Assembly: GCA_964035545.1 (NCBI GenBank)
Contig: OZ037768.1
Span: 17,901,700-17,965,699, forward strand
From: Bugula neritina
Lineage: Eukaryota > Animalia > Bryozoa
Length of the DNA: 64,000 nt
Direction of reading: 5' to 3'
The position numbers were made by a program, and so were the translations under genes. A model generated the notes under the pieces. It searched no databases. It was not told the DNA's origin and was given only the letters and a program-made list of their open reading frames with translations. Positions 51,036 through 60,000 of this stretch are shown one piece after another. Numbering within the stretch: the first letter of the stretch is position 1; each line of letters opens with the position of its first letter.

Positions 51036-53152
51036 TCAAAGTTTTTTCAATTTAATGCTTGGACTACCATGTGCATCATTATCCTCATTGTTGGTAACTG
51101 AGTCGGTTTGTGTTGAAGAAGAAGGTTGCGCAATGTTTAAATGGGTTGAGAAGTCCACAACGCGATGCTGTGACTCAATCTGGTTTGCAAGAAATTCATC
51201 ATCAGAAGAAGATGAAGAAGAACTTGATCTAAGAAGGTTTAGTCTATTGCCTCCTGTTCTTACAGACTGCAATACATACAAATACTCCATTACTCATCTG
51301 ACATCACATGATGAGGACGAGGCTATAATAGACCCTTTTCAGAGATCCCCAATATCCGCCCTTAAAATTAAAAGTTGTGGTCTCTCAAAATGAGATGTGT
51401 TGAGCAAAATAGACTTGAACTCAGTTCTGCGGCTTTGGTTACTGCTGAAGTCTCACTTCAGCATTGCTTAGTAAGCAAAACCACAAAAATGCTTTCAAGT
51501 CTATTTCCCTCAAAATTATCCATGAAGAAATATTTTTAAAAACATTTTTGAACTGCTAACCTGTGTGCTTATACCAAAATATATATCCGATATCTCTTGA
51601 AATAACAATTCTATATAGCATAATAAGAATTTTAAGTAGCAGCCAAACTTTAATTTTTTAATGAGTTTGCTCTTTATACAAAGGTTCAATCTATTAATTT
51701 TACTTTGTACTTTGTAACTTTTAATTTTAAAGGGGGACATCAGGGACTTCTGAAAAAGGTCTATTAATTACATAAGTAATGATAACGAAAAAAACTCTTG
51801 TTTTTATTTAAGAGCTTTGTCAAACAGTTAATTGGATAAGTTACTACCAAATACCATAAAATTATGCTAGTGTTTCCACAAAATGGAATGCAGCTTGAAT
51901 TTCAAACCATAATGATTATATTTGAAAAAAAACAGACTTATAGTTGTTAAGCAACATTAAGCTAATGTCCTAGCATTACACAATTCATGGAGTTTGTAAT
52001 AGCAATATATTCGATGCTTATTACTTTCAGCCTATAAAATACTTAGAATAAGATATAAGCAAATGCAATATGTTTTGCTTATCAGCATGAAATAAAACCT
52101 GCAGCATGTAGTCAGCTTTAAATGTATAAAAGAGAGAGCACCATATATACACAGCACAGCACACACACTGAATATGTCTCTAACCTCGAGGAAATTCTCA
52201 ACTTTTTGAATATACATCTGAGAATATTGGAATTTCTTTAGCACTGCTATAAAACGAAAGCTAAGTTTATTAAGCCGATCCTCGTCAGTAGAGATGTGAC
52301 AGTCATGATAGTGCTTCAATATTAAACCATAAGCTTTACTGTAAAACTCTAAGGCAGTCTTTTCACACCTTGATCTCTTATCATTGTCTACAGAAACAAA
52401 TCTAACTTGTATACGAAAACAATTGATTGTTGTTCGAAGGCTAAAATATTGTGCACTACATAAACTAATGAACCCTCTTACTTGGAGTTTGTGACCAAAA
52501 GCTTACTCGATTGGCTAATACAATACAAAAGGTTACTCGATTGGCTAGTACAATACATAATATTACTTGATTGGCTAGTAAAATACATAAGCTTACTTTC
52601 TTCGCTAGTACAATACTGACAGAGTTCACAGCTGTCAGCATAGTCTACGTAAGCTCGGAATAGTTCAAACTTGTTGTTGAGAGGAGAGAGTTCCAGAATA
52701 TAAACTGCTCGTTTACAAAAGTTAACGGAATCATTAGCATATTTTTCTGATAACTGACTGTTGTCTTCATTTATCCTAAAGTCAAAACAATGCTGGTTTA
52801 CATAGATACATGTACACAACACCTGCTAAAGTACTAGATAAATATTCTGTTCTATTACTACCACAATGTCCCTCCCTATTTTATAATCTTCACTTGATCT
52901 ATTAACTGAAGCCAAATGCAAATATACATAAATTCAAGTAGTTTTTCTTACTTGGTGATTGCCCAGTTGCGCATCAGTGTTGCATGTTCAACAAAATTAG
53001 TAGCTGCCATAGCACTATGTGCCATCCCACTTTTCTCGTATTCAATATCTAGTTTATAACGTAATCGTTCCGCTTTTCCATACTTAGTATCTTTTTCTGC
53101 ATCATTCAAGTTTCCTTCACAAGCCCTAAATGTTGCTTTTTTACATTGAATT
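51036..53152 (-). CDS. Extra four-exon C-terminal cassette of the STAND genes (no own 5' exons); probable alternative 3' end of paralog 2
   Basis: Exons 53152-52952 (201 nt), 52775-52597 (179), 52387-52185 (203), 51266-51036 (stop TGA). All are open with canonical GT-AG, and homologous to exons 11-14 of both paralogs ([16 protein letters not shown]; KFELFRAYVDYADS; KAYGLILKHYHDCHIS). Confidence 0.8.
51329..51763. mobile_element. MITE family B copy with TAG...CTA termini
   Basis: TAGACCCTTTTCAGAGATCCCCAATATCC ... GGGGGACATCAGGGACTTCTGAAAAAGGTCTA; second copy at 40315. Confidence 0.8.
52500..52617 (-). repeat. 30-bp tandem repeat x4 spanning an exon/intron boundary
   Basis: Minus strand: gtattgtactagcgaagaaagtaagcttat / gtattttactagccaatcaagtaatattat / gtattgtactagccaatcgagtaacctttt / gtattgtattagccaatcgagtaagctttt. 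Confidence 0.9.
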
Positions 53153-54016
53153 CTAAAAGCAAAATAATATAACTTATATTTTCACAACTTTAATAGAATC
53201 AAAGTTATACCTGTGGAATATAATTAACCATCATACATTGGTGGGCCTCAAAAATTAAGCAAAACCTCTCAGAATTACAAACTAATGCTTTGTATATACC
53301 GGTACCGGTATGTCGTTGAGAACAGAAAAATCCTTTAACTCTTTCGTGATTATCAGACAAAATAAGCCCCAGTGCATATAAAACTAACAAAAACAAGTGA
53401 ACATACGTGAGTAAATATGGGTGAGTATTGGCATAAATATTTGCTTAATGGTCTGCTAATTAAGTGCAAAAATACCAATATATTTTATTCGTGATTATTC
53501 ACTGTATTTTATCCTTAAAGTGCTAAAATAAAAAGATTGCACAACACAACACAAACATATTTTGGAATATCAGAAATCAAAATTTTTTTCAATCATTTTA
53601 TGTTTATTCAAATAGACATAACATGAATAAACATACTCGTAGAAACATTGCATATATCAGAAGTAATACTATCAATATATTTTATCTATTGTTGTTAACT
53701 GTATTTAATTATTTGGGCACTAAAATAAAAAAAATATATATATACAGCCTAACATAAAAATGTTTTATAATATCAGAAATAAAAAAACATTTAGGTCATG
53801 TATATGAAGTATGTGCACTAAAGTATATAATACAGTATATGCATATAGCTAAAATGTAGCTGTCTAAAAGTCGTATGCTTTGTATGCACTATTAAGAAAG
53901 TCTGATGAGTAAAGAAAATAATGATGTGTCGGTTATAAATATTGTTCAAAGTCATTATCAAGCAACTGCCCAATACAGAAGATAGTTCTAATAAGTGTAT
54001 GTATACAGTATCAGTT

Positions 54017-57000: not shown

Positions 57001-60000
57001 CAATACCATCACTACGTTTCCATGACTTATGCGAATGGATGCTTGTACAGATTAATTTGTAGTTGTCATTTTATTCAATGCAACTGTTTCCAAACATCAG
57101 ATAAAAATCCATTCGAATAATTCCGATGAAAATGTAGTGCATGTCCGAATGCAATTAATTTTTGCTAAAATACAATACTGTAACACTCTGCGTTAATATT
57201 ATTTTTATATACACAGCTTTCAATCTAAATAAAACTAGTATAATAGGAAAACTAAATACTCACAATGGCTGCAGTATAGCTATGTTCAGATCTTTTGTTT
57301 CTGCCGATTCTACATATTTGCGAGCTCTTCTGCAGAGTGCAAGACTTTCTAAAATTGTGCCCATATCACCGGGGTTTCCAAAGTAAGTGCTGTCTGCTTG
57401 CAAAAGCACGATGTGAACAGAAAAATAGTATCGGACCCCTAGCCATTCAGAAGACAATTTGGCCAATTCAAGTGAATTTAAGGCATTTCCTAATGCCTTG
57501 TTTCGCTGTTCTATCAGTTTTGTATCTCGAGAGTTTTTTGTTGAAGATGATAATGTAAGTAATGCACCAGATGCGTAACTGTAAATAGCCTTGCCAAAAC
57601 TGTATAAATCAAAAAATCTGCTAAGAGACTTGGGCTCCTTTAGCTCTTGTTTATCAGTGAGAAAATCCTTAAGTTCGCCCCACATTTTCTCAGCAGTGAG
57701 TAGAATAATATACAAATACCACAGAAGTGATTTACTCACAGGCTCACATTTCTGGTTGAAGGCAGCTTCTTCGATTGTGCTTATTAGCCAGTTGTCAAAG
57801 CGGTCATGAAAGTAATGAAAAAAGAGAAAAATGTGACATATTTCACTGGGCGTCTTTAAAACCGGATTGCCGTCTCCGGTGGAAAATAATAGCTGAAAGC
57901 CTTCTGGCTCTTGAGACATGTACATCAGAGCATTCTTCACATGAGGTTTGATACGCATAAACTGGGTACTGAGAGATTTTAAATTGTAGGCTATTGTTTG
58001 TTGAGGTCTACATAGCACGAAAAAATTTCTACCAGTTGACACCATCTCTTTGACAAAATACATGATATATCTTCGCCTGAACTAAAACATAAAGAAACAT
58101 TTTTTGTTATCAAAATTGCCTAAATATTTGGAAGAATTATAGTGCAAATGCCTTTTATGAAGTTAAAGAAAAAGTTATTCAATCTATGTTGGCATGTACT
58201 AAGCTGATAGAATAGTAAATAAAAGTGAAGTGCAATAAACTGTGTAAGTGAGCTTATAAAGTATGACTGAACTGCTACTGAATATGCTTGGACTTGTGAT
58301 CTATGACCTCAAGCACTAAAATATTATGATCAGACAGATTTAATTAAAATTTGTACACGCCTTGCAGTACTCACGTACAGCAATATTGTTTCAGTTGTTA
58401 TAAAAGGAAAAATTTTAAAGAGGGTTGCAAGTGGGAATAGTAGAAAAGGTTATGGTCTAGATACATATAAATTAGTGTGCATACCAAAACACACTCGCTA
58501 TAGTACGGAGAGCCTTGATCTTCTAAACAACTGTCCATTTTCATCCTGAGAAACTCTAAAACTAGAGGATGATGAGCGTTGACATCTGTGTACTTCTCCT
58601 TTTTTTCTTTTATAGAAGAGGTATGAAATTTCAACCAGAATTGATCAAGAAACTGCCTTTTTATATCTTCAAAAAACTGAGTTCGTGGTTCACTTAAATT
58701 CAAAACCTAAAATTAACAAAAATCAAACGTAATATTCTACACGTCAAACATTTTTGATTTTCATTGAAACTATACCCAATGATGAACATGTTAGTTTCAT
58801 ATTTACTGAACACATTTTTTAATTATTTTCCTTTACAACACTTTTCCATAATTTGTATACACCCAAATTTTTTACAAAACTGGGAATATTCTTTACCTTT
58901 TATGATTGAAATTGATTTTATTTCATTTAATGAACAACATAAAAACGCAAATGCAACAATTTTTAATTCATGGCTCTTGGGGAAAAAAGGCCATGGAGCA
59001 ACACAAAAGAAATAGAGAAATGTACGAAGCCTCACATCATAAAGAGCACTGAGCTGTGCATCTCTGCCAAATAGGGAGAAAGCCAACAAAATCAGATGCT
59101 GTCTCTTTGACAGTTTTTCAAATGCTCTCTGAAGTCCCTCCTTGACGAGGCACTTGACATGTTCAACATCGTCAATAGTTAGACCAGTATTCTCAGCAGT
59201 GACTGAGTAGTCCATATCTGCTGCTTCGCCAACCAGTTTCAGCAGAAAAGGATGTCCATCACACAGCTTCAATATCTCTTCTTTTTTGGTGTAGCCAAAA
59301 GAACTCTAGAGATAAAATTACATAACTGCAATACATTGAATATACTGAAAGATAGAACTGAAAAGAGATATTTGCTGCTACAGCCTTACCCCCCCCCCCT
59401 CCTTCCCTAGACACACTTTGCCGGTACATAGGCCGCGTAACATAAAATGCCAGCCATTTTTAATGTGTTCAAGATGAAGTTCTCAAAGTCCCTTATTGGG
59501 TACAACCTATGACATCACATTGGACATTTAAAATTTATATCAAATGAGTTAACTCGAATGTTTCCTTGTCCAATAGGAGCTCGATGCAACTTTTTTCAAT
59601 CAAGCAGTGTTTGATCCTGACGTACCGTAACATCATAGGGGAAGCGCAGACATTTTTAAAAATGGCTGACACTTGCTTTTACGGCCTACGTCACAGCAAA
59701 GTGTGTCTAGACCTTAGACCCCAAGGGGATATTCTTACAAAGGAAGCTCCGAGAAGTTCCTTAGCAGCCTCGTTGTTTAGCCTTTCCAGGTGAATATCTT
59801 TAGAGTAGCTATTCATTTGTGACTTAATATCCTTCACATCTTCCCCTTCAGTTTTCTCAGTGGTCATTTGAAAATAACTCTGACTGGTAACTATAATCTT
59901 CAGCTACAACACATGCAGTGACTTAGTAAATTAGAATTAGTTTCACCATCTTCTCTCAACAACATCCATAGATGTGCATAGCTCTGCCAAAACATCAAGT

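Follow-up and report, generated by a model that had tools for sequence, protein, structure and literature searches.

The window analysed here is a stretch of 64,000 nucleotides of the bryozoan Bugula neritina (assembly GCA_964035545.1, contig OZ037768.1, positions 17,901,700 to 17,965,699 of the forward strand; all coordinates below are those of the window). It contains two tandem genes on the minus strand that share a 14-exon plan and are predicted to encode STAND proteins. In gene 2, it is highly likely that a single STAND core is spliced to either of two terminal four-exon cassettes, A and B, with separate 3' ends, as an earlier note made from the sequence alone had proposed; the ends of RNA contigs, selection on cassette B and a public gene model that joins the core to B all support this proposal.

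Gene 2 comprises ten core exons (63490-57264), then cassette A (56300-54015) and cassette B (53152-51034), while gene 1 has one cassette, C:

63343-63490, minus strand: gene 2 exon 1 (ATG at 63490), matching the N-terminus of public gene model KAF6027924.1
62661-62866, minus strand: gene 2 exon 2, the bulk of a predicted six-helix N-terminal bundle, weakly death-fold-like (sequence and structure model)
58485-62510, minus strand: gene 2 exons 3-9, nucleoside triphosphatase (NTPase) module with Walker A, Walker B, GHP and winged helix (motifs, Pfam, Foldseek)
57264-58081, minus strand: exon 10, the large exon shared by both predicted forms (818 nt), coding for the arm and the proximal helical repeats; splicing would branch at its phase-2 donor
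56094-56300, minus strand: cassette A exon 1 (A1), 207 nt; 57264->56300 joint in three RNA runs
55443-55621, minus strand: cassette A exon 2, 179 nt (frame, RNA joints)
54836-55038, minus strand: cassette A exon 3 (A3), 203 nt (frame, RNA joints)
54015-54274, minus strand: cassette A last coding exon, acidic Ser-rich tail to KKRKKS, stop
53484-53608, minus strand: two AATAAA after cassette A (53608, 53489); an RNA contig of the untranslated region (UTR) reaches 53518
52952-53152, minus strand: cassette B exon 1 (B1), 201 nt, with a phase-2 acceptor; one RNA contig opens with 29 non-genomic letters and then enters B1 at 53152
52597-52775, minus strand: cassette B exon 2 (B2), 179 nt, spliced to B1 and B3 in three RNA runs
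52185-52387, minus strand: cassette B exon 3 (B3), 203 nt (frame, RNA joint to B2)
51034-51266, minus strand: cassette B last coding exon (B4), Ser-rich tail to KLKKL, stop; the B3->B4 joint lies outside the RNA-compared stretch
36213-45735, minus strand: gene 1, tandem paralog, 14-exon plan, one cassette
38565-38365, 37656-37478, 37360-37158 and 36495-36213, minus strand: the exons of cassette C of gene 1

Two complete cassettes behind one core are borne out at every border of the core, A and B, all of which have GT-AG ends and lie where the earlier note had placed them. Exon 10 ends in phase 2, the acceptors of A1 and B1 both fit the donor at 57264, and internal exon lengths are conserved among A, B and C (first exon 207/201/201 nt, second 179/179/179, third 203/203/203). 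The assembled frames are free of stops (core plus A 1054 residues, core plus B 1043, gene 1 1057), and in gene 2 two homologous sets of 3' exons, duplicated in tandem, follow a single donor that they share, each set with its stop. Protein identity over cassette exons 1 to 4 is 42/40/39/28% between A and B (the first value close to the earlier hand count of ~40%), 48/46/45/30% between A and C, and 54/39/48/33% between B and C. NTPase exons are not part of B, again as claimed before, and its earliest in-frame Met is residue 43; a whole-genome search made for the large exon and for cassette exons 1 and 3 found two copies of the former and three apiece of the latter, every one of them within the window.

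All junctions of A, including 57264->56300, are joined in three RNA runs and none of them in a DNA run; B1-B2 and B2-B3 are likewise joined in three RNA runs from three studies, and neither in the DNA run. In the RNA runs X9 and X12 the contig of exon 10 ends exactly 1 letter beyond the donor and the contig of A opens with 29 upstream letters, while in X9 the contig of B opens with 29 non-genomic letters before 53152; just upstream of B, the spacer has depth 0 at 53196-53386 in both runs. The first letters after exon 10 are AG in A1, AA in B1 and G in the intron. Among five splicing models simulated as k=31 graphs (k being assumed from the 31-letter words), only splicing of the core to A plus splicing of the core to B yields this 1/29/29 pattern of contig ends, with a predicted A unitig of 1379 nt vs 1377 observed. 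Hybrid splicing (A1->B1 or A3->B1), intron retention and read-through were rejected as sources of the pattern, as they misfit in the simulation. Independently of these contigs, KAF6027924.1 consists of core plus B and skips the intact A; it was built by AUGUSTUS with transcript hints (PMC7576161) and, being a hint-guided prediction, is supportive rather than proof of the joint. From the contig-end pattern and this gene model, the shared core is very probably also spliced to B (57264->53152). Contig depth (A 16.8/20/246-308, B 5/8-9/54), a rough measure, suggests that A is the major form.

Cassette B is under purifying selection and is neither a relic nor a misassembly. Overlapping contigs from a DNA run of another colony tile 52150-57747, and the order exon 10, A, B, with nothing inserted, is found in two JGI metagenome contigs and in assembly GCA_010799875.2, these mutually non-independent sources representing one other lineage, ~6-8% diverged in the local introns. 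Because the layout is the same there, no hidden or collapsed third 5' half lies between A and B, a scenario that the earlier note had considered, and assembly collapse is rejected. Compared with the other lineage, B has 17 synonymous and 17 non-synonymous changes, giving a ratio of non-synonymous to synonymous rates (dN/dS) of 0.27 (Fisher p=2e-4) and not the value of ~1 envisaged for a dead remnant, with no stop, a single in-frame 3-nt indel and unchanged splice dinucleotides, the introns having many indels; the value for A is 0.41 (p=0.012). The comparison among A, B and C that had also been suggested gives 0.17-0.41, with near-saturated dS. Purifying selection on B and its splicing reject a dead remnant as its present state. 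As for the surroundings of B2, a 30-nt tandem repeat at 52496-52618 overlaps its donor and has a higher copy number in the other lineage; a GTAA donor-like motif recurs in frame in the repeat copies, and RNA contigs take the first donor. Shared exon 10 (57264-58081) is the fastest-changing coding part: its dN/dS between lineages, 0.71, does not differ significantly from 1 on the low side, and the other lineage has an insertion of 10-11 residues in it.

The poly(A) signals of A and B are sequence predictions, and contigs cannot show transcript ends. An AATAAA at 53608 agrees with the signal formerly placed ~450 bp before B; since there is a second AATAAA at 53489 and one RNA contig of the 3' UTR of A extends to 53518, the signal used by A may sit only ~340 nt before B. 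In most transcripts the exon-10 donor would join A1, the four A exons would be spliced, and cleavage at the poly(A) signals of A would remove B; in a minority, polymerase would pass these signals and the donor would join B1, 4.1 kb downstream, so that all of A would leave as one intron. The cassettes would be mutually exclusive because each has its own stop and 3' end, and with candidate poly(A) signals at each, the choice would lie between cleavage after A and skipping of all of A. Competition between splicing and polyadenylation would be the default explanation. When intron 10 and the spacer were compared for RNA pairing of the docking/selector kind, the result was no better than in shuffles, and apart from transposon hairpins no long inverted repeat shared by both lineages was found.

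By its motifs, the product of gene 2 is an NB-ARC-type STAND ATPase, with Walker A GMTGVGKS, Walker B YVIFIDD, a GxP-type GHP and a His-His motif in the winged helix. Full-length profile searches and folding used the public core-plus-B protein, and other searches single exons: Pfam NB-ARC scores 24.9 bits (cut-off 23.5, passed), NACHT 19 (cut-off 26.7, failed), and single exons give weak P-loop matches only. The model (predicted local distance difference test, pLDDT, 75; mostly >85 in the C-terminal half) has in order an N-terminal helical bundle, a nucleotide-binding domain (NBD), a helical domain (HD), a winged helix domain (WHD; residues ~412-497, with a beta-hairpin and pLDDT mostly >85), a long solenoid of helices and, from residue ~997 on, a disordered tail. 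Its best Foldseek match is the STAND-TPR protein PH0952 (6MFV; E 2.3e-6), followed by plant resistosomes, SAMD9, APAF1 and CED-4. The label of NLR, in its strict LRR sense, did not hold, the C-terminus being all-helical in the model and without LRR match in Pfam; the repeats are predicted to form a TPR-like solenoid of helical hairpins, although Pfam TPR models do not match the core-plus-B protein, and a language-model comparison places TPR clusters nearby (0.87), which is no more than a lead. The CARD assigned earlier to the N-terminus was likewise not recovered: Pfam and PDB sequence searches returned neither CARD nor any other match for the bundle, and its six-helix model scores Z 7.2 and 6.6 against PYD, 6.2-6.5 against DED and 5.1-5.4 against CARD, all under the noise level of the tool, so that it is probably, judging from the model, a death fold nearer to PYD/DED than to CARD. 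The claim that the C-terminal repeat region is swapped holds for its distal part: the two products would have ~775 residues in common, including the arm and the proximal repeats, and differ in the final eight helices and the tail, which come from the cassette.

STAND-TPR sensors bind the inducer and also restrain the NBD (PMC6468293), from which different specificities or thresholds of the two isoforms would be a reasonable expectation. The swapped helices could by analogy change inducer binding or autoinhibition, with an unchanged effector, in innate immunity or cell-death signalling. A possible but less probable alternative accepts the two-cassette splicing, with which it is compatible, and differs in function only: the protein would be a nuclear or developmental STAND whose swap alters localisation or partners via the tail. 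In keeping with this, members of the family all end in a basic stretch resembling a nuclear localisation signal (KKRKKS, RKRKR, KKRKL, KKRKTL), a weaker version of which ends B (KLKKL), making a difference in isoform localisation a second possibility. In contrast to immune receptor families that have expanded, this one is also small, with three genes found. It is opposed by the death-fold-like N-terminus, tandem duplication, copy-number variation and fast divergence of the sensor end, features typical of immune STANDs.

Several points weigh against alternative splicing to B and the function proposed for it. The 57264->53152 joint is not among the best 15 of the 19 joints in the RNA contigs; of the two junctions predicted earlier, that to A is found in three RNA runs, while for that to B the contig ends fit a branch. 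All RNA consists of short-read contigs from the other lineage, not of full-length reads or peptides, and the letters of the 29-nt lead of the B contig are known by count only. In this colony B is without a canonical AATAAA nearby, AGTAAA lying ~266 nt after its stop; the other lineage has an AATAAA ~257 nt after that stop. An immune or cell-death function of gene 2 is argued by analogy. Finally, in the total RNA run X7 the B contig, with its exons spliced, continues unspliced upstream to 53635, and exon 10 is without the branch. This last pattern is what would be seen if B were spliced only in read-through transcripts already holding A and its stop (a non-coding 3' extension, likely a target of nonsense-mediated decay), or transcribed from a start of its own in the spacer to give a short repeat-only protein from Met43, possibly a decoy. 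Such an origin is nevertheless improbable: the simulated models of this kind miss the contig ends of X9 and X12, the spacer is empty in these runs, selection acts on the protein sequence of B, and intronic contigs of X7 are about as deep as B, so that pre-mRNA would explain the unspliced spacer. Read-through molecules may exist too, as a side product. Alternatively, B could be what is left, dead or decaying, of the 3' end of a third tandem gene whose 5' half was recently lost or collapsed in assembly. In favour of this, the divergence among A, B and C is of similar extent (39-55% identity at the amino acid level), the best tree places B with C, although that grouping has no support (69/72), and gene 1 is multi-copy in another assembly. 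It is very improbable, however: the 5' half is absent in both lineages, which speaks against both recent loss and collapse, and B has been under purifying selection over ~0.1 dS and is spliced.

In Dscam arrays, internal single exons are chosen by RNA pairing. Gene 2 resembles Dscam1-type arrays in that duplicated exons would be used one at a time, and differs in having two choices only and no such pairing found. A closer precedent is the substitution of tandem-duplicated C-termini via alternative poly(A) in human GNAO1, NECTIN2 and ZFP64, among 77 human C-terminal cases of which some are multi-exon (PMC8373072); there too, duplicated 3' coding exons are used as a block to give homologous alternative C-termini, whereas the block of gene 2 comprises four exons (~270 residues) at ~40% identity, in a bryozoan STAND receptor-like gene. 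Candidate receptors of brown algae also vary their repeat region at the exon level (PMC3341825, PMC11378527), with one exon for one repeat and many shuffled or skipped, in contrast to gene 2, which would pick one of two fixed four-exon blocks whole, together with its 3' end. Gene 2 shares the NBD-HD-WHD, arm and helical-repeat C-terminus of PH0952/6MFV, MalT (PMC6468293) and APAF1/CED-4-type STANDs; unlike these, it is an animal gene, bryozoan-restricted by sequence in the searches made, with repeats lacking a Pfam TPR match, an acidic tail with a basic end and two alternative distal repeat blocks. The mechanism class (duplicated 3' exons with alternative poly(A)) is already known, while its predicted use in an animal STAND receptor-like gene is new as far as found, a literature search of incomplete coverage having returned no report of gene 2 or of a like arrangement in an animal STAND/NLR-like gene. 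With two forms only and precedent for the RNA mechanism, the surprise is limited. Two isoforms with the same effector and ATPase and different distal repeats would nonetheless offer a natural experiment, with its own control, on what the sensor end does in an animal STAND-TPR protein, in a colonial animal with a well-known bacterial symbiont, and would represent a route to new receptor specificity missed by gene counts, the public record found holding the B form only.

The 20 sequence relatives found are all distant or from B. neritina, and those named are bryozoan; a homolog search with query P0024 gave no matches, probably since cluster representatives are short. A single cassette is present in three genes of Watersipora and in two complete metagenomic loci, which indicates that this is the ancestral state. 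In the trees, the three cassettes A, B and C group together as a Bugula clade, within which A+B is neither rejected (approximately unbiased test, p-AU 0.30) nor established; B may have arisen by duplication within gene 2, or as the end of a third gene, since lost, that was captured by the gene 2 donor. A distant third paralog, ~33 kb beyond the window (host contig ~17994000-18003250, plus strand), has the same exon-10 donor context and, like the Watersipora and metagenomic loci, a single cassette. A homolog in another species, presumably another bryozoan (L028:8163-8601, also L029 and L030), carries the first cassette exon in two open tandem copies that are 40% identical, with a 28-nt intron with GT-AG ends between them; this pair goes back to a separate duplication event behind the same donor and is a candidate for mutually exclusive use. 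A rather unlikely generalisation is that in bryozoan STAND-TPR receptors the sensor end has been diversified time and again by exon duplication behind the same phase-2 donor (as a four-exon block, or as a single pair 28 nt apart), with regulated switching of copies by tissue, symbiont or pathogen state and with the NTPase module homogenised between paralogs; if true, an animal NLR-like family would have a recognition repertoire generated by splicing.

The earlier contrast of splicing with whole-gene duplication does not apply, as the family does both. Between genes 1 and 2, dS is 0.33 in the NTPase exons (4-8) and 2.3 in exon 10, and an intron-spanning block (43534-43855 vs 61650-61971) is 91% identical; gene conversion probably homogenises the NTPase module while the repeat region diverges. 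In GCA_010799875.2 (L025:25663-34489), gene 1 is followed by the intergenic stretch and its own first exons once more, and the annotation includes additional gene-1-like proteins, reflecting either copy-number variation of gene 1 or an uncollapsed haplotype relative to the window.

Hairpins resembling miniature inverted-repeat transposable elements lie in introns of both genes (55121-55398, 59407-59710, 51326-51766 and 40315-40683), the one at ~55120-55400 standing out by its very high depth in both DNA and RNA contigs. An open reading frame of 106 residues (48965-49285, plus strand) lies on the opposite strand in the interval that separates cassette B from gene 1, and another (32626-32880, plus strand) contains repeated PPQGAPQY units.

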